A stretch of 28,235 bases of DNA from Vitrella brassicaformis CCMP3155 (lineage: Eukaryota; Protista; Chromerida). A program made the translations under genes and the position numbers. The stretch spans positions 1 to 28,235 of the forward strand of contig CDMY01000712.1 in assembly GCA_001179505.1 (NCBI GenBank), read 5' to 3'. How positions within the stretch are numbered: the stretch's first letter is position 1; each line of letters opens with the position of its first letter. Below, in pieces: positions 1,833-26,653 of the stretch. Under the pieces are notes generated by a model that ran no database searches, was not told the origin of the DNA, and saw only the letters and a program-made list of their open reading frames with translations.

Positions 1833-3308
1833 CTAAGTGGTGTCCATGGGGGCCTCGCCGCCCTCTGCCGCCGTCACCTCGGACGCAAGACGATCCAAAT
1901 ACACCTGCAGCTCCTCATTCGACAGTACTGACCACACACACGCGCACATGAAGACAGAGAGGGCGCTCGTGGATGACACCCAGAGGCTCCTGCTTACTTT
2001 TGAACTTCTGCTCCGCCCCGACGATTGCGATGTCGACACTCTCAGCAGTGATCCTGCACACGCAACGTGGGATGGCATGCATCGGATGTGTGTAGATGAG
2101 TGGGTGCAGTGTCTCGCTCACTCGTCGTCTGCAGTCTCTGATGCCTTCTTGAGAGCCTTGAGCGCATGCATGATCAGATCGTCGACAGACACTGCACACG
2201 CGGAAGACAGAGGAAAGAAGCGAGGGGGCAGGTCAGGGCAGGTCGTGTGGCGTCCAGTCAGCCAGTCCATTACCTTCTTTGAACGTCTTGAAGTGCTTCT
2301 CGAGGTAGGTCTTGGCTGACTGACAACGGCTGCCCAGCGCCATGGCCTGTGTCATGTCAATGCGATGCGTCGATATTCCTTCATCACGCAAGACTCTTCT
2401 GCTGCTGCAGTGCTGTGCTGTGCTGTGGTGTGGTCGTCACCTCGTATTCGAAGTAGTTGCCGCTCGGACACGTCTCGAAGAGATGCGGGCCAGTCATCTG
2501 ACACAAGGCATGCATGACACAGACACAAATCAACCCAAGCCAACAGACCCGATGATGACTGTGTGTTGCATCCATCCGTCCGTCCGTCCGTCCGTCCGTC
2601 CAGGTGTGAATGGCTCACATCGCTTCCCGCGACGAGCAGCCCCACGCCATAAGGACGCTTGCCCATCCTCTGCGTGTTGGCCTGAGACCCTGAGGTACAC
2701 ACACAACACAGACAAACATGCACCACATGGGGGTGGGGGTGCGGGTGTCAGGGAGGCGTCCGTGTCGTTGCTCACTGTCGCCGACGTCAGCCACGAGTCG
2801 TCCGACGGGCAGCGCCTCATCGAACTCGTACTTCTCCTGCTGACACTGGGTCCGCATGTACGAAGCCAGCACACCTGCATCAATCAACATCAATCAACGT
2901 TCGTTCGTTCAACAGGGGGCCCCTCCCCTTCCTATGTCTGTCGAGCAAGTATGTTCGACTGACGCACGTGCATCTGCAGTGAGCCCGGAGGCGGCGAACC
3001 CGACGTGATCATCGACCTTGTACAGCTTCTGCTGGTGCGAAGACATCTGCGTCTGGGCCTTCTTCAGCGCTCCCAACACCTGCACACAACAAACAAACAA
3101 CGTGTTTGATTCCTGTGGCAGGGGGGCGTGCGTGCCTGCCTGCCAGTGTGTTGTTTGCGCTGTGTGCTGTGCTGACCACGTGTGTCTTAGATCTGAGTCC
3201 GACGACACAGGTGCCCTGCTTGACGGCCTCCATGGCGTACTCTATCTGGTGGATGCGCCCCTGAGGACTCCATGTCGTCGGGTCGGTGTCGTACAGATTA
3301 CGATACAT
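1833..3308 (-). CDS. PSMA1: 20S proteasome subunit alpha type-1 (alpha6), 9 exons, 254 aa
   Basis: [32 protein letters not shown]...SGLTADAR...RPYGVGLL...TCPSGNY. Exons 3308-3177, 3079-2968, 2874-2776, 2689-2619, 2497-2441, 2346-2274, 2191-2122, 2053-1998 and 1927-1833, all with GT-AG introns, sum to 765 nt in frame. Confidence 0.95.
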
Positions 3309-3507
3309 CCTCTGAGCCTTTCGCTGCTGTTAAGCCGGTTAGGCCTGCGCCGGGATAGATCTGGAAGCTTAGCTTGCGAGCTCAGATCTCCGAAGGGAAG
3401 GAAAGGAGGTGGCAGGACGCGAGTCTAAGCGGCCTGCGTCCCGTTCATCTGTCCTCATATCCTTGATTGATTGGCAATTCATATCATTGACGCTGTGATA
3501 GTCAGTG
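3309..3507. promoter_or_regulatory. Putative bidirectional promoter, PSMA1 / OZ-like gene (199 bp)
   Basis: Divergent ATGs at 3308 (-) and 3508 (+). Contains TGCGAGCT (3375-3382), two AGATCT and two GGCCTGCG. Confidence 0.65.
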
Positions 3508-5009
3508 ATGTCGGCTGGTGCGACGGGCAAGGTGACGGCGGTGGTGCAGCGCAAGGCACTCGAGGCCATACGGGGCCACCTGCCGGTCAGATCTCAGCCC
3601 GCACACTTCCTCGAGTCGCAGCGCCACGCCGCCATGGCATTCATCCAGCGCCTTGGGCAATTTGCTGTCGAGTGCTGCGGATGTGCTACGCCGCAAAAGA
3701 GAATACAGGTGCGTATAAATCTGCAGGTCCAACACGTGCTGCCGCTTTGCAATGGCTGTCTTGTGTGCGTGTGTGCGTGTGCGTGTGTGTGTGTTTGTGT
3801 TGTGTTACATGTCAGTTGAAGAAGTCGTTGCTTCACGCGTCGTTGGGTCTTGAGGTTGAGACGTTCCTGACCGAGACGGGCATGGATGTGCGCCACCTGC
3901 AGACACTCGCCGCCATGGAGTGTCCCGTCGTATACCCTTCTAAAGACATGTAGGCACGGATCGAGGCCTGCATGTCTGTCTGTATCTCATGGATGGATGG
4001 ATGTGTGAATGTAGGAGTGTGACGTTGCTGGAGACCTCGCCCAAGAAGATCATCAACGCGAGCAAGCGACTCAGGTTCTTCCTCTCACTCCCAGAAGTCA
4101 CGGTGGGTACACAAATGCCCGAACACGCTCGCATCTCTGTGACGCACTCACGGGAACTTCATCCTCGTTGCATTGCAGACGTGTCGATCGTGTTCGAAAC
4201 GCGGCCGATGTGCCAGGTTCCTGGCGGTCAGCAAACGACACAATATCTATCACACGAGCTGAGGCGCTGCATCGTTGGTCGTTCGCGATGTGCAGGCGCC
4301 CGAGGGCCGGTTGGACCTGTCCGACGTCTCCAGAATTCTCGTCGGCCTACACACGGTGGGAGGAGAGAGAGGAACGCAGAACCAGAGCCATGATATGTTT
4401 TTTGACGATGTGAGTTTTTTTCCTTCCGTTCTTCCTCTGCTTGGTTGGGGTTTAATTCATTTGGTTGTTGTATCAGTTGTGCCGCACATATGTTCGCTCG
4501 CCCGAGACGTACAACCTGGTGGTGACGCCGTCGGAGCTGCAGTCGGCACACGCCACACTCGACGCACTTTTCATTTACATGAAACCACTCGCACAATGGG
4601 CCGGTATCGACAAGGTCCGTCTGCCACCTGCCAACAATCGAACCCTCCTGAAAGTGACCGCTGGCTGCTTGTGTGCGTGTGGTTGTGCAGGTGCCTTTGG
4701 CGGACAAGAGGACGGCGTGCATCGCTGCCAACACCATCCAGAGGAAGGTCAACGACAAAATACGACGGAAACGGGAAGCCAAGGTCACCCAGGGAGGGAG
4801 GGAGGGAGGGAGGGAGCAACACATACACACACAGACTGACAGACAGATCCGAGCGCATTGTCCCCCCTGTGAGTGTCAGATGCTCAACATGCCCGAGTGG
4901 CTCCGCAACACACTCGACCCGGCCACCATCAAACATATGTCCAGAAAACAACGGTACGTACCCACACCACAAACACGAGTACACCTCCATTGCTCTCTGT
5001 TTGTCTGTT

Positions 5010-5104
<95 letters not shown>

Positions 5105-8100
5105 ATGTCTGTCTGTCTGTCTGTCTGTGTACCTGTCATCCCTCCATCCATCCATCCATCAATGTGACCATGTGTCCTGCAGCGCCATAGTCCAGCGTTG
5201 GTTCGATGCGCAGGACATCTGTCCGCCGGGCACACCTGAGGAGGACCAGTTCATATGGGTCAAGGAGGCGGAACAAGACAAAGGCGAGTGGGGACAACTC
5301 AATATCGACGAAGCTGATCGTGCCGACAAGCGACACCACGACCACCACACCAGCGCCAAGAGGCCCGACCAAGCTTCCGAAGAGAGAAAGGCCGCAGAGA
5401 AAGAGATCGAATACGTAAGGCAGCCAGGAAGGGCGGGAGGCAGCTAGGGTGAGAGGGAGGGATAACGGAAGAAAGGTGGTGGAGATGTGTGGGCTCGTGC
5501 ATCGATCATTGGACGCAGGTGAAGCTGTCCGACGGTCGTGTGATTCCCCTGGAGAGTCTTGAGGACCTGCCCGTCAAGCGTCGGTTCGTCTACCGCATGC
5601 CCAAGGTGCACAGAGAGCAAATCATCCAGTTCAACGCTATCTACAACCAATACGTCAGGTATGTCAGACTGGTGGACCCCCACGCCCTTCCTACTCTACT
5701 ATGTCGTTGGGATGGTTGGTGGTCTGTCAGGGGCTTGACTCGTGAGAAGGGGGCGGCCGGGAAGGAGCTCTATGTAGATGTCGACACATACACACCTGCA
5801 CAACAGGTGCTGTGACATGTGTGCACGACGCACACAGAGAGACCACACGGGACTTCTTTCCCACCGCCCACCTACCCGTCTTGTGCTTTCGTGCCGAGTT
5901 CAGGTGTCGTCAGGCCGCGGCCACAACGAGCTGATCAAGCTGGGCGAGGGATCAACCGGGGACAGCACGGACGATGATGTCGACATAGCAGCGATCGAGT
6001 CTGCCGAGGATCAGCTGGACTTGCTGCCTTTGCCGAGGGGCGGTTACACGCTGGTGGACCTCCTCAACTCTGACACATTCGCCAAGACGCCCGCCAAGCT
6101 GGCGCCGTACATCAGCGTCGCACCCAAGGTGCAGTTTGCGTCCATTCCATGAGTGGGTGGGAAGGGAAGCTGCGGTGCACGTGGACAGCTGTTTTTGTTT
6201 GTTTCGTCCCTCTGTTGCTGGCACTAGGGTCTTGAGGGCGTGCAGTACATCAAGAAGCTCAACCCGGCGGTGCGACATTCAACACGCCCACGCCATCACC
6301 ATCCCCTCTCCTTATGAAATGAATGGATGCATTGACTGATGCGACTGACTGATGCGTGTGTGTTGCTTCAGGATTTGTACCGCACCCAGAGCTACATCCA
6401 GAGCCTGTGGGGCAACGCCGACCTGCTCAAGACCATTGACACCCTCCCCTTCATCCAGAGGGTGCCCTTCGACCAGCCCCACCACTCCTCAGGGGGCGTC
6501 CTGCCACCGAACAAACTCCCATTCAGACATACCAAGGCCGACCGCTCGCACCACGTGCCCATGCCGCCACCGGACAGACGGCAGCTGACCGAAGGGGACA
6601 TTCCCGATGAGCTGATGAACGTGGGCGTGAGCGACGAGCTGGGCGATCGTCTTGTGAACCGGCGTGATGGGCTGCTGGAGAGCCTGGACGAGTCGGTCAC
6701 CATCACGCCGCTGAGGATACGACCTGGCAGGGGCAGGAGCCAGGCGCAACCACACACGAGAGGTGGGTAGCGGGGTGCACTGGTGGGCTGGGTTGGGTTG
6801 GTGAGACTTGTGACAGACAAACACAGACAGACAGACAGACCGGAGGGACGCACAACCCGCCAAGCTTGCAATGCGTGAGTGTCGCTCGCGTCGTGTCGTG
6901 TCGTGTGCGTTGTGTGATCGACTTGATTCAGACTCTGGACCTGTTCAAGGTGAGGGTGAGGGCGACATGTCCGCGTGGCGCGCTGCCCTGGCGGAGCGAC
7001 AGAGGGAATTCGAACAGCGACAGGCGACGAGCACCCGCCAGCAGGTGGGGGCTCGTCCCGGGTTGTCTGTCCCACGTGCCACCCTGACAAACAAACATAC
7101 ATACGTACTTACTGCTCTGATGCCATTCATTGTTGGGCGGCTGAATGAATGGTGTCAGGATGACGATTCTGACAGCGATGGCCAGCATGACAGGCCAGTC
7201 CCGCAGCAAACGGCGTCCGCACAAAGCGATGAAGCCCTCTTCCACATGGCAGTCGAGGTGGGTGGGGTGGGTACACACACATCCACCGATGCACACGAAC
7301 GAACGAACGGACGTCGCCAATCAATCCAATCCTCACTCGTTGGCTCCTTGTGGGTGTGGTGTGGATGGTGTGTGTCAGGACCGGCAGACTTCTGGGAGCC
7401 TGGCGGGTGCCTCCAAGCTCGCCCAGCGAGGCAATACCCGCCACCCATCACCAGATGCAGACGACCCGCAACAAGAGGCCCCGCAGCAGGATGGCCCAGC
7501 GGCGTCAGGCATCCCCTCGATGCTGGATGTGCAAGCACGGGCGGCCCAGCTGTCCGCCGCACGGTCGGCCTCTGCACCTGGATCTGAGGGTGAGCCGTGT
7601 GCAGGGTTGGTTGAGGGTGGTCGCATCAGTGTGGGGAGGCGCCGCCGTCTGCGGACCATCGGCGACAAGAAAGAGGACTCGGACGACGAGGACCACCGGT
7701 TCATGGCATGGAAGGTACGCATCCCCGCGGGCGGATGGGTGGGTGAGACAGACAAAGCTCATCCTCGCAAGCACAGCACCTGCCGTGCCCTGTCTGTTGG
7801 CTGGCTGCCCTGCCCCTGTCATGACTGGCATGCAGGCGAAGCGGGCATCACCAGACTCATCAGATTCTGCCACCGAAGACGCAGCCTCTCATGATCAGGA
7901 TGCATCGATCACGCCCCCTACGTTCTCAGGCGGCCGCCGCAAATCCCGACGCCCGAAGAGAGACATCGAGATAGACCAAGAGCACGATGCTGATGCTGCT
8001 GGTGACGCTGACTCCAGCCCGTTCTTCATGGAGTCAGTGGGCGGTTCCCCTCGGCTGCAGCACCGAGGTCTGAAGCTGGTCGACTCGGTGGACTTTGGGG

Positions 8101-9226
8101 GCGACAGCGAGGCTGCTTCGGTCCGGCTGATGGACGTCGATATGTCATCGGATGATGTGCGGCCCAGCGAGGGGCTGCCCCGCCGTGCCGAGGGTGAGGA
8201 GAATGACCCTGTGTTCCGATCTCAGTTTCGGGTGGGCCTCGCCGACGTCAGTGCCATCCCACGCAGCCTGAGTGCTGGCGAGGTGGACGAGGAGCGGCAG
8301 CTCATGACCGGCAAACTCAGGGCATGGACACAGGTACCCTACCTACCTGCGGCTGGGAGAGAGGGAGAGGGAGGGAGGGAGGGAGGGAGGGAGATGGACA
8401 CCCCCCATCCCCATGTGATGTGCCTGTCGTTGGTGTGTGTGCCGTGTCGTATGTACCAGAGCAAGGGCCACATCGAGACGCCTTTCACCCGCTTCCCCAA
8501 GTTCACCGACTACAGCAAAGACGCCTACTCGCCCACCGAGCAGCGCCGCCAAGCCAAAGACACCCATTCCCCTCCCCCCACCTCTCGCATGCCCCGCGCC
8601 AAGCTCGAGCAAGCCACACTGGGCGAGCTCTCCAAATACATCAAGGCACCACCCAGTTCTGACCAAGACGATGCACAAGATGGTGATCGTCACGGCAGCG
8701 ATGTGGCGCCTTTATCGGGTCCGCGCGTCAAGGGCAAGGGCGTGGAGGACGACCAGGCTTGGGAGAGCAAGTACGGCGTGCAGAAGGAGTGGAGTGTGCA
8801 GGAGAAGCACTTCAAGGACAAGCAGGGGGCGGGCAAGCACCACGCATTGGGTGGCGCCGTGCCAGTCAACCCACAAACCACGGAAATGGCACGCAGGTAT
8901 GATGCCATCCATGCACACGCCACACATGACACACACAGTACAGTCATTCCGTGTGTCTGTCTGTCTGCCTGTGTGAATGCAGTGCTGCGGCGCTTCAGCG
9001 TGTGGTGGATCGTCAGCGAAAGGCCGAGATGATCGAAAAGCTGCGAGCGGAGCGACAGAAGAGCAAAGACAGACACAAGGACGGCGGCAAGGCACCACAG
9101 ACACCGCGAGAGCAGATGGCCGTGAGTCGTGAGGAGGCGGCTCGTCTGCGAGATGAGGCGCCCCTGGGCCCTGCTCGAAAGAAAAGTCCGGAGGAAACCG
9201 TTGCCGACTTGTTTTGCAAGCCGTAG
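3508..9226 (+). CDS. Large (~1,200 aa, ~20 exons) uncharacterised protein with an N-terminal OZ/VAR3-like Cys-containing domain and a low-complexity charged C-terminal half
   Basis: A chain of phase-compatible GT-AG exons starts 3508-3708, 3816-3949, 4015-4102, 4179-4226, 4296-4355 and ends at ...DLFCKP TAG 9226. The spliced N-terminal part reads ECP...KKIINASKRLRFFLSLPEVTTCRSCSKRGRCARF...DVSRIL. Some 3' exon borders are less certain. Confidence 0.7.
4997..5128. repeat. Imperfect (CTGT)n tetranucleotide microsatellite, intronic
   Basis: About 33 units of CTGT/TTGT, the longest simple repeat in the window. It accounts for the LSVC/TDRQ pseudo-ORFs. Confidence 0.95.
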
Positions 9227-9774: not shown

Positions 9775-12035
9775 TCAGTCCTCGACATCGGCCACCCCCT
9801 CGGCCTGGCGCTCCAACTTTTTCTGCAATACAGTACACAATCGATGTGATGTGATGCGGTGCGATGGAGGCAGGGAGGGGTGGGTGGGTGTGTTGGTTGA
9901 TGCGTGCAGTGAATGGATGACCTTGGTTAGTCCGTAGTATTTCTCCTTCTCCTCTGAGGTCTGGAAGCGCCCGTGGCCGTACTTGGATGACGTGTCGATG
10001 AACTTGATGCCCATGACGTTCGTCTGACCCTCGGCAGTCTCCTTGCGGACCACCTACACACACAGCATACATCCCATCCAGACACACACACACACACACA
10101 CACGTACAGGCATGGATGTCAGGCATCCATCCATCCATCCCTCATTCATTCCCTCATTCAGTTGACGCATTGATGTACCGGCGGGTAGAGAGTCTTCCTG
10201 ACGGTGAGGAGTCGCTTCTTGGGTCCCGGGATGCACCCCTTGAGCATCAACCAATCCTCGTTCACCTCGCCGTAGTGCGGGAAACCACCTAGGGAACAGA
10301 CACACACACAGGCAACACCGGCACATTCACTTCTCTACGGGTCCGTCTGTTGAGAGAATTTCCTTGCTTGGTTCCTGTGCTGGTTGGTTGCCTACCCATG
10401 GGTGTGATGCCCTTCTGTGTGACGTCTGCTTCGGTGGCGGCCGAGTTGTGTGCGTTGGTCTTGAGGCCGACACGGTAGATGCGCTTGTTGATTTCCGTCC
10501 GCTGGTGGTACCCACGCTGGCCGGCACGCGGTACCTGGAACTGCACGCGGGCCGGGTGCCACGCACCGATGCAAGCAACCTGACCAACAAACAAACCAGC
10601 CAATGTAGCGCAACGCACCGTGAGGACCAGATGAACAAGGAAGCTGGGATGGATGGGAAGGGGATGTCTTGGTTACCTTTCGGAGCCCTCTGTGGGTCTT
10701 GCGTGGGAGGCGGGTGACGCCCCAGCGGGTCACCACGCCCTCGTAGCCCTTGCCCTTCGTCACACCTACACAGGAGTTTCATGTGATGTTGTCCATCCAT
10801 TGTCCCGTCTGTGTTGGTCCTGTGAGGGTTGCGTACCGATGATGTCGACCACGTCGTTTTCGTTGAAGACGGCATTCACAGAGATGGTCTGCTCAAACAA
10901 ACTGGTGATGAACTCAACCTAACGCAACGCACACACATCCGCACACAGAGGTATCGGACTCCTGTTGTGTGATGTCCGTCCGCCGAATGCTGGCTGACCT
11001 TGTGTGCAACGTCGCGTCCGCCGTTGACTTGTATCTCCGCGATGTGGGCCTTCTTCTGTCCGGTCTTTGCGAGTCGTGGCTGTGTGTGTACGATGGCGCG
11101 GACGACGGTGCAGTACTGGGCGATGCGCTTGAGCTCGGCGTCCATCTTGTTGTTCTCCTGGTAACGCTTGGCATACTTGGTGTACGCCTTCTGCTTCGAA
11201 CGATACCTAACAACACAACACAACACACACACAATCACACACGTGAGCCAGTGGACGGTCTCTCTGTCTGTCTGTGTGTGCGTGTGGGTGACCAGTTTTT
11301 GTAGAATCGTCGCTTGCACTCCTCCGAGAGGTGTCCTGCCCAGACGGACGTGAGAGCGCGGAGGCCCCTGGGTGTCTCGATGTAGCCCACGAGGCCCACC
11401 ACCACCAGCGGGGGACACTCCACTATCGTCACCGCCTCAACGCACTCCTTCTTGTGCAGCTCTGACATCAAGTCACACGCAGACAGACACGCCAGACATA
11501 CAGATCGATCGACATACCAACCCAACACGCGGAACACCCTGTGTGTGCTGTCTGCCTCTGACTCCCTCCTGGTGCGTGTGTGGTGTCTGTCTGTCTGTCT
11601 GTCTGTCTTTGTGCTGCCCTCCCTCCCGCCTCACTTGATCCGGGTTTTTCGATCTCCCGTACGACGTGTGTCATGCCGGCCTTCCAGCCCATGAAGGCAG
11701 CCAGGTTGGGGGTCTCGCTCGGCTTGTCCTTCTGGTACGCCTTGACTGACACGGTCAACACAATACAGCACACAGGGAACAGAGGCGGGAGGGAAACAAG
11801 GCCACACACAGATGAGCGACGAGGCGAGAAGCCACAGGTGGGCCTGGCTGGGTGTCGTGTGGTTCCCCTCCTCCCCCCTGGTGCCTCTGTGTGCCAGATC
11901 TGCCCGTCCGTGTGCCGTGTGTTGCGCGTTGTGTTGTGCGCGTCACTCACTCCTGCCCCTGGGGTGTCGGCATCTCTTCCGCGGGAGAAATCCCAGCGAC
12001 CCGTGCCGGGGATGCTCGAACTTACGGTGGGACAT
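9775..12035 (-). CDS. RPL3: 60S ribosomal protein L3 (uL3), 10 exons, 405 aa
   Basis: [68 protein letters not shown]. Exons 12035-11951, 11745-11635, 11461-11293, 11206-10999, 10918-10837, 10765-10677, 10579-10396, 10288-10179, 10053-9922 and 9822-9775 sum to 1218 nt. Confidence 0.97.
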
Positions 12036-12155
12036 CCTCTCGACACACAAGCCTCCAACAGCAGGGTTTTCACGGAGCCCTAGTCTCCTGACTGCGAGCT
12101 TAAATGTGCGAGCTTCATCGCAGAAAGTGAGGCACGAAATCGCTTCGACAGCGCG
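12036..12155. promoter_or_regulatory. Putative bidirectional promoter, RPL3 / RPL31 (120 bp)
   Basis: Divergent ATGs 120 bp apart. Direct repeat TGCGAGCTT with cores at 12093-12100 and 12107-12114. Confidence 0.75.
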
Positions 12156-17944: not shown

Positions 17945-18983
17945 ACATGTCGCGCCAACAATAAAACACACGCATAGCGTGTGTACTGATAGAGATAGCC
18001 TTCCATTCAGCCTGCCTACTTCTTTCCTTGACTTCTTCCCGTGACTTTTTTCTTTTGTATTGGCTGGTCGCACACACACGAAGGGGGTGTTGATTCGATG
18101 GTGCTGCGTGTCCTTGTACGTTCTCGGGTTCTTCAAAGCACACGTCTGGATGGGCTGGGTGGATTGGGTGGCTGGCTGGCTGGCTGTGTGGTAGGGAAGT
18201 GAGTGGAATGCATGAGGTGAATGTTTGGCAGAGAGGGGCTGGCTGGCATCGAATTACGCACCCGTACGTGCAGTGTACAGACAGGCAGACTTCTAGAACA
18301 CCCCGCTGACCGACAAGCGTGTCTGTGTGACGGATCCCCGGAGCTAGACGAACACTGAGCGTTGTCGAACGAATCATTTTCCAAGAATGAGTCCTGAGGA
18401 GGGAATTAAACAAAAGCTATCGCTTCCTCAGAGGCGAGGAAAGGGGAAGATGAGTACATGTACAAATCATGAGCTGATTTGACTCATCGCCTGGTGAGTC
18501 ACACAGCCTGCTGCGGTAGAGAACTGTAGGATTCACTTTCTGACCTCAAACTGCTCACCAAAATAATGAGACAAAGGGAGACAAAGACGACATCGTGGTC
18601 GACAGGTGAGTAAGTGAGAAAACCAGGTAATCAGTCAACCAAGGGCCCAACAATTGCCTTGATGCTGGTCGCCAACTCTGACTAGAGAGACGGAAGCTGC
18701 TATGATTGTCGGATGCCATTGGGATGGATGAAAGAAAGAAGACACATGCTCCCTTCCAAGTCTGCATCATGACCATTACACAGACGACATGACCTGTCTT
18801 CGGGAGGACGCGCGGCATTCGACCCACGCCCCCAAGGGAGAGGACAGGAAAAGCCGACCAGAGAAGGACGAAGAAAGAGGCAGACCCTTGTGGCTGAGTG
18901 GACCGAAACGACACGAGAAATACCGAGCGTCGGACAGGGAGGCAACACACTGAGAGCAGATTCGTCTTCATATCGCCCATGAC

Positions 18984-19283
18984 NNNNNNNNNNNNNNNNN
19001 NNNNNNNNNNNNNNNNNNNNNNNNNNNNNNNNNNNNNNNNNNNNNNNNNNNNNNNNNNNNNNNNNNNNNNNNNNNNNNNNNNNNNNNNNNNNNNNNNNNN
19101 NNNNNNNNNNNNNNNNNNNNNNNNNNNNNNNNNNNNNNNNNNNNNNNNNNNNNNNNNNNNNNNNNNNNNNNNNNNNNNNNNNNNNNNNNNNNNNNNNNNN
19201 NNNNNNNNNNNNNNNNNNNNNNNNNNNNNNNNNNNNNNNNNNNNNNNNNNNNNNNNNNNNNNNNNNNNNNNNNNNNNNNNNNN
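18984..19283. other. Scaffold gap (300 N), probably spurious
   Basis: The same 32 nt (GAGAGCAGATTCGTCTTCATATCGCCCATGAC) flank both sides, at 18952-18983 and 19284-19315. Confidence 0.9.
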
Positions 19284-19367
19284 GAGAGCAGATTCGTCTT
19301 CATATCGCCCATGACTCAGAATAATGTGAGCGAGCGTTGGCGTTAGACGTGGGGCGTCACTTCTCCA

Positions 19368-22237
19368 ATGTGGTGGTTCACGAGCACCCCGGCTGCCATG
19401 GCAATTGGCATCGCCCTCTGCCTCTTCGCCTTTTTCACTCGACACACTTTCGCCCAGAAACAGCAGCAGCAGCAGCAGGATAAGTACTTGACCTTCAGGG
19501 AGAGCGGCCTCGCCTACATCCACCCAAGGGAACACGCACAGTGAGCGCCAAACAGAAGAACCGCAAGAGATACTCACACTCACCCCGGCGTTTGCAACTG
19601 ATGCGATGTGGCCTTTGTGTGTGCAGATATGTGTCGCCCTTCACGACCATCGCCCTCCGCCACGGAGAGGTGCTGCTGTCTGATGGCCTGGAGAGCAAGG
19701 TCAAGGTGTCGGCCCGCGACGAGGGGCAAACGGTGCTGTCCTCCGACCAGCGCACCCTCATCTATAAGCCCGCCACACCCAACAAGCCGCTGCCGCGTGG
19801 AGAGCGGGTCACCGTGCTTGTAAAGCCCGGCATCAAGACAGTCAATGGCACCGTGCTGCCAGGTAGATGGACAGGGAGTCCGGCAGGGGGGAAGGGAACG
19901 GGGCAACACGCCAGGCTGGTGCTGTCACTCACTGTGTTGGGCACGTGTGCGTGTGTGTGCGAATGCAGGCGTTAAGTGGTCATTCATTGTGTCGGACCAT
20001 CATGGTGGCTATCCCGGTGCACGCTTATACGCGGGCAACGACTGGGCTCCGATCGAGCCGAAGGCACTCATGAACCAGCCTATACCCCTCAACACTCACG
20101 CGTCAGTCCTCAGTTTTGACCGCCAAGGCCCGCCCCCCAAATTGCCCTTCCCACCTGCCATGGCTGACATGGAGGAGGGGTGGTACCCTTACACGAATAC
20201 ACATACACATACACATCCATTCCCCACACACTCACCCCACCCCCTATCTGTGTCTGTCCCTATGCGTGCGTCTGTGCCGTGTGTGTACGTCAGGTACGAG
20301 GCGCCCTTTAACCACTACAAGACCATCCCCGACCATCTGCCGCGGATGCGGGTGCGGGGGAAGCCCAAGTATGATCAGCTTGCCCCGGGCTACTTCTTCA
20401 TGTCAAACATGTGAGACGGCACAACGGGCGGACAGACAGGGAAACAGCTTTCTTCATGATCTGGCAAGGGTGTGTGTGATGATCGTGGTGGATGTTGCAG
20501 CATTTTCGACACGGAACCCTTTGGCCACGTGTGGCACCCAGCAGTGATGGTTGTGGACAACCATGGTGACCTTGTCTATTACGATGCCAGGGGTGAATGG
20601 AAGAATCAGACTCGAGGGGAGGCGCCGGGCATCATTGAGATATCGCCGATGGGCCGGCTGCTCGTGAAAGAGAACGAGGCAATCACTGAAAAGGACAATG
20701 ACCTCAATTTCGTCAGACGACACCATCCCGAGCACGGTGGGACAGACAGCTTACCTAAGCCGTGCCATTTTCCTCTTTGTCCCCTTTGTCAGGCTACCAG
20801 TTGAATGCACACGACATGCGAATGGACGCAAAGGGGAACCGGCTCTTCACAATCGCGTAACAGAAACAGAGACGATGCTCACGTACACAGCACTCTTCCT
20901 TTCAACATGATGTGGTATGTTATGTCGCAGCGACCCGCAGCCCATCAATGTGAAGGGCATGTGGGAGGGCGCCCCAGACACCGCAGTCAAAATCGTGGGT
21001 GCGGTCGTCCAGGAGGTCGACCATCAGAACAACGTTGTCATGGAATTTCGCTCGTGGGACCACTTCGAGCTGCCCTGGCTCATCAAGCAGTCTGCCATCG
21101 AGTTCAACGCTACGAGCCCGATATGGGACCTGATTCATCAGTAAGTGCTTCGAACCAGCCAGGCAACACACATACTCGTCGTACATTCCCTCATATCCAT
21201 CTCGCGTGTTCCACGCGTGCGTCATTATTGTGCGTTCGAAGAAACTCAGTAGATTTCACGGACGACGACAGCATCGTCATCAGCTGGAGGGGGACCAGCA
21301 GTGTGCTGAAGGTCGACAGGGAGACCGGCGATGTTGTGTGGCGGCTGGGGGGCACCCAGGCCTTCAACCAGTTCAAGCTTACCCAAGACGCCGCTCCCAA
21401 GGGCGGTAAGTTAGTCGCGTGGAAATCAGAGATTGTGTCTGTTTCTAATCCATGTGTGCCTGCGCCATGATGGATGCAGAATCCAAGATGCCATCGTTCA
21501 TCGGGCAGCATGACGCATCGCTCAAGGGCAACAGGCTGACCGTCTTCGATAATGCATTCCTCGACCGTTACGTACCCGGGTGTGTTGGTGGTGTTGCCAG
21601 CTTTGAGACAACGTTCTCGTCACGGGCACTTGAATACAATCTCGATCAGCACTCAATGGTGGCCAAGAGGATCTTCTCCTACAGCGGCCCCAGACGTGCA
21701 GATGGCAGCCTCAAGTACCGCTATGTCTCGCGGTGCCATGGGAGCTTTCAGAAGACCGACAAGGGCACCGGGGTCATCGGCTGGGGGGGGATGCACATCA
21801 CCGGCCACCTGCCTGTTGTCGAGGAGGTCTCTGTCGACGGCGAGCTGCTGCTATCGTTCGACTGGATGAGCGGCGCCAACTCGTACAGGGCGAGGAAATA
21901 CGGGTGGCGGAACGTCACACCGCACTGGCGCCCGACGCTGCTGCTCATCGACCAGGTGCTCTACTACAGCTGGAACGGCTCCACCGACGTGGCTGCGTGG
22001 CGCATCGAGGCGGCAGAGGGGCCCGGCAAGCCATTCACCCGAGTGACGAAACACAAGCGGACCAGATTCGAGCACTCGGTCGCTCTGACCAAGACGGCCT
22101 TGACGCCTGGCGGCCGTTGCATGGTGTACCGGGCGATTGCCATGGGGAAGGACGGCAAGCAGCTCGGGGCGAGCGATGGTGTGCACACAGCCGAGTGCGG
22201 TGACACCGGTGGCAAGAAGGGCACCGTGCGAGCCTAA
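19368..22237 (+). CDS. Secreted arylsulfotransferase (ASST / Arylsulfotran_2-like beta-propeller) with an N-terminal bacterial Ig-like domain, copy 1; 9 exons, ~720 aa
   Basis: Signal peptide plus polyQ; Ig-like segment SDQRTLIYKP...LPRGERVTVLVKPGIKTVNG; ASST motifs HDMR, DLIHQNSV, ISWR, KVDRETGDVVWRLGG, QHDA..LTVFDN, SYRARKY.W and YYSWNGSTDV..W. Exons 19368-19540, 19627-19862, 19969-20182, 20294-20410, 20501-20736, 20793-20856, 20931-21140, 21242-21405 and 21480-22237 sum to 2172 nt. The start could instead be the ATG at 19398. Confidence 0.85.
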
Positions 22238-22331
22238 GGGAAGGGGTCTCTGTCTCGGTAGCGTTTGTCAATGTGTGCAAGATCAGGTTGTTGTGGGTGC
22301 CTCATGTGCTGCATGTGTGTGTGTGTGTGTG

Positions 22332-22631
22332 NNNNNNNNNNNNNNNNNNNNNNNNNNNNNNNNNNNNNNNNNNNNNNNNNNNNNNNNNNNNNNNNNNNNN
22401 NNNNNNNNNNNNNNNNNNNNNNNNNNNNNNNNNNNNNNNNNNNNNNNNNNNNNNNNNNNNNNNNNNNNNNNNNNNNNNNNNNNNNNNNNNNNNNNNNNNN
22501 NNNNNNNNNNNNNNNNNNNNNNNNNNNNNNNNNNNNNNNNNNNNNNNNNNNNNNNNNNNNNNNNNNNNNNNNNNNNNNNNNNNNNNNNNNNNNNNNNNNN
22601 NNNNNNNNNNNNNNNNNNNNNNNNNNNNNNN
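22332..22631. other. Scaffold gap (300 N)
   Basis: N run starting at a (GT)n tract; it hides the 5' end of ASST copy 2. Confidence 0.95.
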
Positions 22632-24709
22632 CCGACGATATTGACGAATCGGAAATCGGCCGATGGCCCCCGAAGGATGCGGCTGGTCAAGTTCCCCTTC
22701 CACCCCCTGTGGCTGACATGGAGGAGGGGTGGTACCAAGCAGCCAACCACACACTCACAGAGAGAGCAGCGTCCACACATCACACGTGAAATGGCTCACC
22801 CGTGCAGGTACGAGGCGCCCTACAACTATTACAAGACCATCCCCGACTATCTGCCACGGATGCGGGTTCGGGGGAAGCCCAAGTATGATCAGCTTGCTCC
22901 AGGCTATTTCTTCATGTCAAACAAGTAAACTGAGACGACACAAACCGCGTGGGCTGGCTGGTGGATGTATGATGATCCGTGGTGGATGTTGCAGCATCTT
23001 CGACACGGAACCCTTTGGCCACGTGTGGCACCCAGCAGTGATGGTTGTGGACAACCATGGCGATCTTGTCTATCACGAGTACCTGGGACAGCAGAACGCG
23101 ACGCGGGGAAATGGTGCAAGCGTCATTGAAATGTCGCCGAAGATGGGGCTGCTGGTGCAAAGAATGGGCGGGCTGCTCGAGAAAGACCAACACTTCAACT
23201 TCGAGCGACGGCATCATCCCGAACATGGTCAGTGAAAGATCTAATATACGTCAAGACCAAGAGAGACCTCCCTGCGCTTTTTTCTCTCCCTTTGTCAGGC
23301 TATCACTGGGACCCACATGACATGCGGATGAACAAGGAGGGCAATCGGGTCTTTACCATCGACGACCCGCAGCCCATCAATGTGAAGGGCATGTGGGAGG
23401 GCGCCCCAGACACCGCAGTCAAAATCGTGGGTGCGGTCGTCCAGGAGATCGACCGTCACAACAACGTTGTTATGGAATTTCGCTCGTGGGACCACTTCGA
23501 GCTGCCCTGGCTCATCAAGCAGTCAGATTCCCCATTTGACGATACGCAGAATGAGGAGGAATGGGACCTGATTCATCAGTAAGCGCTTTGAACCAGTCAG
23601 GCAACACACATTAATCGTGCATTCCCTCATGTCGGTCTTGTGCTGTGTGGGAAAATGCGCATTCAGGAACTCGGCGGATTTCACGGACGACTACAGCATC
23701 GTCATCAGCTGGAGGCATCTGAGTGGCGTGCTGAAGGTCGACAGGGAGACCGGCGATGTTGTGTGGCGGCTGGGGGGCACCCAGGCCTTCAACCAGTTCA
23801 ATTTTACCCAAGACACCGTTCCCAATGGCGGTAAGTTAGGACGCCCTGGGGGCTTGCGTGGAAATCAGAGATCGTGTTATTATCTCTGTTGATGGTGGGT
23901 ATTCCTGCAGAGAGCGCAAGGGCATCGTTCTCTTGGCAGCATGACGCATCGCTCAAGGGCAACAGGCTGACCGTCTTCGATAATAGCAACCCGTCCGCAG
24001 CGTAAGCAGCGCATCTCAAAACTGAGAGAACCCCGCCATATCTCATCGGTCATGCGTTTTCGATACTGACAGAGCTGACACACGGTTTGCGTCACGGGCA
24101 ATTGAGTACCGGCTTGATCAGCAAAAGTCAATTGCCGAAAGGGTCTTCTCCTACAGCGGCCCCAGACGTGCTGATGGCAGCCTCAAGTACCGCTATGTCT
24201 CGCGGTGCCACGGGAGCTTTCAGAAGACCGACAAGGGCACCGGCGTCATCGGCTGGGGGGGGATGCACTTTACCGGCCACCTGCCTGTTGTCGAGGAGGT
24301 CTCTGTCGACGGCGAGCTGCTGCTATCGTTCGACTGGATGAGCGGCGCCAACTCGTACAGGGCGAGGAAATACGAGTGGCGGAACGTCACACCGCACTGG
24401 CGCCCGATGCTGCTGCTCATCGACCAGGTGCTCTACTACAGCTGGAACGGCTCCACCGACGTGGCTGCGTGGCGCATCGAGGCGGCAGAGGGGCCCGGCA
24501 AGCCATTCACCCGAGTGACGAAACACAAGCGGACCAGATTCGAGCACTCGGTCGCTCTGACCAAGACGGCCTTGAAGCGTGGCGGCCGTTGCATGGTGTA
24601 CCGGGCGATTGCCATGGGGAAGGACGGCAAGCAGCTCGGGGCGAGCGATGGTGTGCACACAGCCGAGTGCGGTGACACCGGTGGCAAGAAGGGCACCGTG
24701 CGAACCTAA
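22632..24709 (+). CDS. ASST-like paralogue, copy 2 (5' end lost in gap)
   Basis: Same motif series (HDMR, HQNSA, ISWR, WQHDA, SWNG) and homologous exons from ...DMEEGW onward. Extra intron at 24002-24072. Stop TAA at 24707-24709. Confidence 0.8.
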
Positions 24710-24739
24710 GGGAAGGGGTCTCTGTCTCGGTAGCGTTTG

Positions 24740-25039
24740 NNNNNNNNNNNNNNNNNNNNNNNNNNNNNNNNNNNNNNNNNNNNNNNNNNNNNNNNNNNNN
24801 NNNNNNNNNNNNNNNNNNNNNNNNNNNNNNNNNNNNNNNNNNNNNNNNNNNNNNNNNNNNNNNNNNNNNNNNNNNNNNNNNNNNNNNNNNNNNNNNNNNN
24901 NNNNNNNNNNNNNNNNNNNNNNNNNNNNNNNNNNNNNNNNNNNNNNNNNNNNNNNNNNNNNNNNNNNNNNNNNNNNNNNNNNNNNNNNNNNNNNNNNNNN
25001 NNNNNNNNNNNNNNNNNNNNNNNNNNNNNNNNNNNNNNN
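24740..25039. other. Scaffold gap (300 N)
   Basis: N run. Confidence 0.95.
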
Positions 25040-25651: not shown

Positions 25652-25750
25652 GGGAAGGGGTCTCTGTCTCGGTAGCGTTTGTCAATGTGTGCAAGATCAG
25701 GTTGTTGTGGGTGCCTCATGTGCTGCATGTGTGTGTGTGTGTGTGTGTGT

Positions 25751-26050
25751 NNNNNNNNNNNNNNNNNNNNNNNNNNNNNNNNNNNNNNNNNNNNNNNNNN
25801 NNNNNNNNNNNNNNNNNNNNNNNNNNNNNNNNNNNNNNNNNNNNNNNNNNNNNNNNNNNNNNNNNNNNNNNNNNNNNNNNNNNNNNNNNNNNNNNNNNNN
25901 NNNNNNNNNNNNNNNNNNNNNNNNNNNNNNNNNNNNNNNNNNNNNNNNNNNNNNNNNNNNNNNNNNNNNNNNNNNNNNNNNNNNNNNNNNNNNNNNNNNN
26001 NNNNNNNNNNNNNNNNNNNNNNNNNNNNNNNNNNNNNNNNNNNNNNNNNN
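25751..26050. other. Scaffold gap (300 N)
   Basis: N run starting at a (GT)n tract. Confidence 0.95.
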
Positions 26051-26653
26051 TACCGGCTTGATCAGCAGAAGTCAATTGCCGAAAGGGTCTTCTCCTACAG
26101 CGGCGCCAGACGTGCTGATGGCAGCCTCAAGTACCGCTATGTCTCGCGGTGCCACGGGAGCTTTCAGAAGACCGACAAGGGCACCGGCGTCATCGGCTGG
26201 GGGGGGATGCACTACACCGGCCACCTGCCTGTTGTCGAGGAGGTCTCTGTCGACGGCGAGCTGCTGCTATCGTTCGACTGGATGAGCGGCGCCAACTCGT
26301 ACAGGGCGAGGAAATACGAGTGGCGGAACGTCACACCGCACTGGCGCCCGATGCTGCTGCTCATCGACCAGGTGCTCTACTACAGCTGGAACGGCTCCAC
26401 CGACGTGGCTGCGTGGCGCATCGAGGCGGCATAGGGGCCCGGCAAGCCATTCACCCGAGTGACGAAACACAAGCGGACCAGATTCGAGCACTCGGTCGCT
26501 CTGAACAAGACGGCCTTGACGCCTGGCGGCCGTTGCATGGTGTACCGGGCGATTGCCATGGGGAAGGACGGCAAGCAGCTCGGGGCGAGCGGTGGTGTGC
26601 ACACAGCCGAGTGCGGTGACACCGGTGGCAAGAAGGGCAACGTGGGAGCCTGA
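26051..26653 (+). pseudogene. ASST last-exon fragment, copy 4, with a premature stop
   Basis: GAG>TAG at 26432-26434 (IEAA*), where the other copies read IEAAEGP. The homologous frame continues to TGA at 26651-26653. Confidence 0.65.

Follow-up and report, generated by a model that had tools for sequence, protein, structure and literature searches.

A 20-exon gene of Vitrella brassicaformis encoding a basic, cysteine-bearing N-terminal module possibly akin to that of the plant OZ proteins

The locus and its gene model

The window analysed here, a stretch of 28,235 nucleotides from the chromerid Vitrella brassicaformis, carries on its plus strand, at 3508-9226, a gene of 20 exons and 1222 codons plus a TAG stop, reconstructed by reading the sequence and by script (Table 1). 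Upstream of it lie an apparently intronless open reading frame for a sufC-like ABC ATPase at 192-1181 (PF00005 at 2e-22) and a minus-strand proteasome alpha-subunit gene, the first exon of which spans 3012-3308 (PF10584 at 2e-13). Downstream, a multi-exon gene for ribosomal protein L3 occupies 9775-12100 on the minus strand (its exon at 11238-11537 matches PF00297 at 3.3e-25) and is convergent with the 20-exon gene, about 550 bp separating the stop at 9226 from the last L3 open reading frame. The 3' third of the window holds a tandem array of near-identical genes; it is broken by runs of N at approximately 18800-19400, 22300-22650, 24400-24750 and 25750-26100, and its copy number and completeness are therefore unreadable from the window.

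Translation of the 20-exon gene is taken to start at the ATG at 3508, the earliest in-frame ATG past a stop at 3499-3501. All 19 introns, which range from 65 to 229 nt, are of the GT..AG type; 17 of the acceptors are CAG and the remaining two TAG, and the donors show little conservation past GT. G+C is about 57%. As computed by script, GC at codon positions 1, 2 and 3 amounts to 0.65, 0.46 and 0.73 over all exons and to 0.55, 0.45 and 0.755 over exons 2-6, with an even value of about 0.55 for intron sequence; the corresponding codon-position values for the neighbouring intronless sufC, which served as comparison, are 0.61, 0.39 and 0.85.

The interval 3816-4355, to which a preliminary description of this DNA had drawn attention, corresponds to exons 2-5. 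Each of these exons is bordered by AG and GT, their phases fit, and the script finds no in-frame stop among them; the junction between exons 2 and 3 splits a single codon, ATG. Borders, phases and codon periodicity thus identify exons 2-5 as coding in this frame, and both the gene and the coding status of these exons are confirmed as real. The peptide previously quoted from joining the four small exons agrees with our translation in every respect save one: the gap between ECP and ETSP, given there as 11 residues, comprises 13 residues in the translated exons.

A different junction between exons 2 and 3 can be drawn, with a donor past CCC at 3928 and an acceptor ahead of ACC at 4032, and would drop this 13-residue spacer. 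That the chain is partly mis-modelled, with exons 2 and 3 possibly spliced otherwise and part of the quoted peptide not made as written, nevertheless seems to us unlikely. It would be permitted by the loose donors of the gene, by the spare GT sites immediately past the CP codons (3929 and 3932) and by the AG ahead of 4032, but every one of the 19 model acceptors is YAG and the alternative acceptor is GAG, which occurs in none of the model introns and on whose account the modelled junction was kept. Moreover, the phases close across 20 exons without a stop, codon periodicity in exons 2-6 is strong, and the conserved-looking motifs of exons 3-5 would be left untouched by the alternative junction.

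Several introns of the gene contain simple repeats: (TG)22 at 3762-3805 in intron 1, (AGGG)6.5 at 4791-4816 in intron 7, (TCTG)33 at 4996-5128 in intron 8, and (GGGA)10 at 8355-8393 in intron 18. Read in another frame or from the complementary strand, these repeats yield long spurious open reading frames with many Cys, Leu, Ser and Val residues.

Table 1. Exons of the gene at 3508-9226 and an element upstream of its start
Feature	Position	Strand	Description
TGCGAGCT element	3375-3382		within the 200-bp divergent promoter 3308-3508, from sequence reading
Exon 1	3508-3708	+	67 codons; basic N-terminus, C-C-x-C cluster close to the exon end
Exon 2	3816-3949	+	44 codons + 2 nt; ...ECP, then a 7-residue tail; acceptor CAG, donor GTAGGC
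Exon 3	4015-4102	+	1 nt + 29 codons; K-K-I-I-N-A-S-K-R-L-R-F
Exon 4	4179-4226	+	16 codons; C-x2-C-x5-C triad, strongly basic, net +5
Exon 5	4296-4355	+	20 codons; D-V-S-R-I-L
Exon 6	4477-4614	+	46 codons; rich in hydrophobic residues, extends the N-terminal module
Exons 7-10	4691-4783, 4880-4953, 5183-5414, 5519-5658	+	middle of the protein, partly hydrophobic; exon 10 43% hydrophobic
Exons 11-14	5731-5806, 5904-6128, 6228-6269, 6372-6762	+	middle of the protein, partly hydrophobic
Exons 15-17	6932-7044, 7159-7257, 7379-7714	+	start of the long tail
Exons 18-20	7836-8333, 8460-8896, 8983-9226	+	rest of the long tail; stop TAG 9224-9226

Protein anatomy, targeting and exon-level searches

The encoded protein consists of an N-terminal portion (roughly exons 1-10) that is more hydrophobic and bears cysteines, and a long C-terminal half that is charged and has few hydrophobic residues. 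Hydrophobic residues make up 23-43% of exons 1-8 and 10 and 14-20% of exons 15-20; the tail encoded by the latter, roughly 570 residues, is 63-68% charged, polar or small, and is probably disordered. Clusters of arginine and lysine are found in exons 7, 17 and 18. Of the eight cysteines in exons 1-6, exon 1 supplies those of its C-C-x-C cluster, exon 2 the one in ECP, and exon 4 those of the C-x2-C-x5-C triad.

Kyte-Doolittle hydropathy in 15-residue windows reveals no ER signal peptide at the N-terminus encoded by exon 1, the maximum for the exon being 0.88 as against 2.78 for the leader of the sufC-like protein. Chromerid plastid proteins need an ER signal peptide preceding their transit peptide, and a plastid location is therefore unlikely for this protein. 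The preliminary description had proposed that the basic N-terminus could be an organellar presequence. The N-terminus is indeed basic (residues 1-30 contain five K or R and one D or E) and is compatible with a mitochondrial presequence, while targeting of the 1222-residue protein to the plastid, for want of a signal peptide, appears unlikely. The leader of the neighbouring sufC-like protein, a hydrophobic N-terminus followed by a basic, Ser/Pro-rich stretch, looks like a bipartite plastid-targeting leader.

Searches for relatives were made with single exons, of 16-166 residues, or with stop-free stretches that contain them. Pfam searches at E<=10 with exons 1-3, 5-12 and 14-20 returned sub-threshold noise only (MmeI_C, TRAM_2, Humanin, Luciferase); single neighbouring exons, searched as positive controls, matched proteasome alpha at 2e-13 and RPL3 at 3e-25, so the single-exon search works for known families. 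Comparison of exons 2, 3, 6 and 14 by phmmer with 177,635 distinct PDB sequences, of low sensitivity for exons this short, gave a best E of 0.85, to unrelated enzymes. An HMMER search of 1.84 billion representatives with exon 6, at a cut-off of E<=0.001, was empty even of the exon itself, the collections searched leaving out records of this genome. A word-indexed protein search yielded no match at E<=10 with any of three queries: a stretch containing exon 3 (proteins of 82-260 aa; two candidates), a 394-aa stretch containing exon 9 (217-690 aa; 28 candidates), and a 599-aa stretch containing exons 18-19 (330-1048 aa; 8000 candidates scored). This search covers proteins 0.55-1.75 times the length of the query, and the longest stop-free query holds 599 of the 1222 residues, so that relatives near 1200 aa are invisible to it; in addition, distant relatives seldom have exact 5-mers in common. 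Exons 3 and 6 had no usable match in the ESM Atlas, and exons 14 and 19 gave pattern matches but no tblastn relative in the JGI metagenomes. No paralogue of exon 3 was found in the 72.7-Mb assembly. On this weak evidence the gene is an orphan whose relatives are not detectable at the level of the exon; because no exon of 16-46 residues can be significant by itself, the blank searches neither support nor refute homology.

The motif block and the plant OZ family

The Organelle Zinc finger (OZ) family of plants comprises OZ1/VAR3, OZ2, OZ3 and OZ4, proteins of the plastid (as OZ1) or the mitochondrion that act in organellar RNA editing or in group II intron splicing, and has as its hallmark at least two zinc fingers of the RanBP2 type (PF00641). 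Ahead of these fingers OZ proteins have several highly conserved regions, described by three MEME motifs and carrying no annotated domain (PMC4359148, PMC7154859), and this N-terminal region has been termed 'uncharacterized and uncatalogued' (PMC7154859). The arrangement of a conserved three-motif N-terminal block followed by fingers runs through the family (Sun et al. 2015, Figs 11 and 13); Sun et al. found no OZ-like protein in Chlamydomonas.

In the Vitrella protein we found no match to the RanBP2 finger PF00641 in exons 1-3, 5-12 and 14-20 (Pfam, E<=10), and a six-frame search of the whole assembly gave five PF00641 matches, none of them on the contig of this gene. Both searches bear out the earlier remark that a RanBP2 finger is absent. 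Nor do the motif patterns of exons 3 and 4 occur together in the upstream 10-kb flank of any of the five matches; this crude test thus reveals no OZ-type architecture in Vitrella. Lacking RanBP2 fingers, the Vitrella protein is not a member of the OZ family as defined, and at most an N-terminal module is common to the two. The differences are plain enough: the OZ family belongs to plants and bears RanBP2 fingers, whereas the protein described here comes from an alveolate, has no finger, and extends over 1222 residues with a long charged tail.

The likeness concerns the order of motifs encoded by exons 2-5, which runs ECP, then K-h-h-N-x-x-KRLR, then, ten residues on, C-x2-C-x5-C, and finally D-x2-RIL. 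Proteins of the OZ2-4 type seem to carry G-C-P, four residues, and [RK]-K-h-V-N-S-x-K-R-[LI]-R, followed by ten residues, C-x-S-C-x-L-R-x-x-C-x-R, and D-V-M-R-[IL]-L. The motifs of exons 3-5 would follow the same order, with the same gap of ten residues from KRLR to the first cysteine; if this rendering of the OZ motif is accurate, about 34 residues align without gaps as a core of roughly 40% identity, a likeness that would be hard to obtain by chance. This rendering followed that of the preliminary description and is not independent of it; should it have been shaped by the Vitrella sequence, the likeness is worthless. The N-terminal blocks would be collinear, with a common consensus of C-P, K-h-h-N-x-x-K-R-[LI]-R, C-x-S-C-x2-R-x2-C-x-R after ten residues, and D-x2-R-[IL]-L, and both would have a basic, presequence-like N-terminus. 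They would differ in spacing, since the splice model adopted for the Vitrella gene puts 13 residues between CP and KK..N.

The pattern N-x2-K-R-[LIVM]-R has its sole site in the six frames of the window in exon 3, and by our own arithmetic from residue frequencies K-[IV]-[IV]-N-x2-KRLR is expected at about 0.07 chance sites per six-frame genome, an estimate of relevance only if OZ proteins had indeed supplied the pattern beforehand. C-x2-C-x5-C, by comparison, turns up about 27 times across the window, for the most part where TG repeats are read in junk frames, and for this reason is not significant by itself.

A short basic stretch with close-set cysteines is likewise found in the CCHC knuckle (PF00098) and in the RanBP2 ribbon (PF00641), although the cysteine spacing and the set of ligands differ here from both; in the preferred splice model, a further cysteine lies about 46 residues upstream of the exon 4 triad. 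The Fe-S loop of the endonuclease III type, C-x6-C-x2-C-x5-C, was considered and set aside: it would call for a further cysteine ahead of the triad, at a distance of six residues, and the last residues of exon 3 include none.

Competing readings and a proposed role

We tentatively prefer to regard exons 1-6 as a compact, basic, cysteine-bearing module akin to the OZ N-terminal block, lacking RanBP2 fingers and continued by a long, charged tail; judged from the sequence, this is possible, if somewhat short of probable. The OZ-like module is a plausible but tentative lead. Nearly as likely is a lineage-restricted orphan, whose likeness to OZ proteins would have arisen by chance or as an artefact of the way the OZ motif was rendered, whose cysteine triad would be an unrelated metal knuckle or nothing at all, and which may be nuclear or nucleolar. 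The Pfam, PDB, HMMER, word-indexed, ESM Atlas and metagenome searches, which together returned no relative, agree with such an orphan, as do the solitary exon 3, the commonness of C-x2-C-x5-C taken alone and the lack of a RanBP2 finger; a tail so rich in charged, polar and small residues and the R/K clusters of exons 7, 17 and 18 are typical of nuclear proteins. The blanks are weak, however, having been obtained with single exons of 16-166 residues only, and the exon 3 motif followed by a triad at a fixed distance of ten residues would scarcely be expected by coincidence if the OZ motif reads as given above.

A protein associated with the mitoribosome of the myzozoan lineage, the other possibility raised in the preliminary description, is, in our view, very improbable. 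Alveolate mitoribosomes have many lineage-specific proteins, and a basic N-terminus without signal peptide would suit one of them. Against this, exons 2, 3, 6 and 14 match no PDB chain better than E 0.85, the PDB includes solved mitoribosomes, alveolate ones among them, and a hydrophobic-poor tail of the length encoded by exons 15-20 is not typical of such proteins.

If exons 1-6 do encode an OZ-like module, it can be described, tentatively, as a small zinc-stabilised module for interaction or for binding nucleic acid. Four cysteines, one from exon 2 and three from exon 4, would bind a putative zinc ion and so lend stability to a small, basic unit able to dock with RNA or with other proteins, the long, probably disordered tail making additional contacts; the N-terminal region of OZ proteins may dock in this way within the editing and splicing complexes of plants. 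Such a protein would reside in the mitochondrion and not in the plastid. Zinc binding, homology to the block of the plant proteins, and the part of an adaptor in RNA metabolism of the mitochondrion, as opposed to the plastid, are all inferred. A broader proposal, which we regard as rather doubtful, is that the N-terminal module of OZ/VAR3 is an older, separable domain. It would occur free of RanBP2 fingers in a chromerid, and hence possibly also among apicomplexans and dinoflagellates, and would mark there an adaptor for mitochondrial RNA processing.

Should the module be the OZ N-terminal block, a domain of unknown function that is treated as plant-specific would gain a second, independent architecture. 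The phylogenetic range of the block would then be much wider, its boundaries and conserved ligands would be easier to define, and tractable relatives such as Toxoplasma would become available, in a lineage with fragmented and unusual mitochondrial transcripts; if the likeness to OZ proteins is false, the gene is another orphan of chromerids and of little general interest.

At its 5' end, the gene shares a divergent promoter of 200 bp (3308-3508) with the minus-strand proteasome alpha-subunit gene, the ATG of which lies at 3308.
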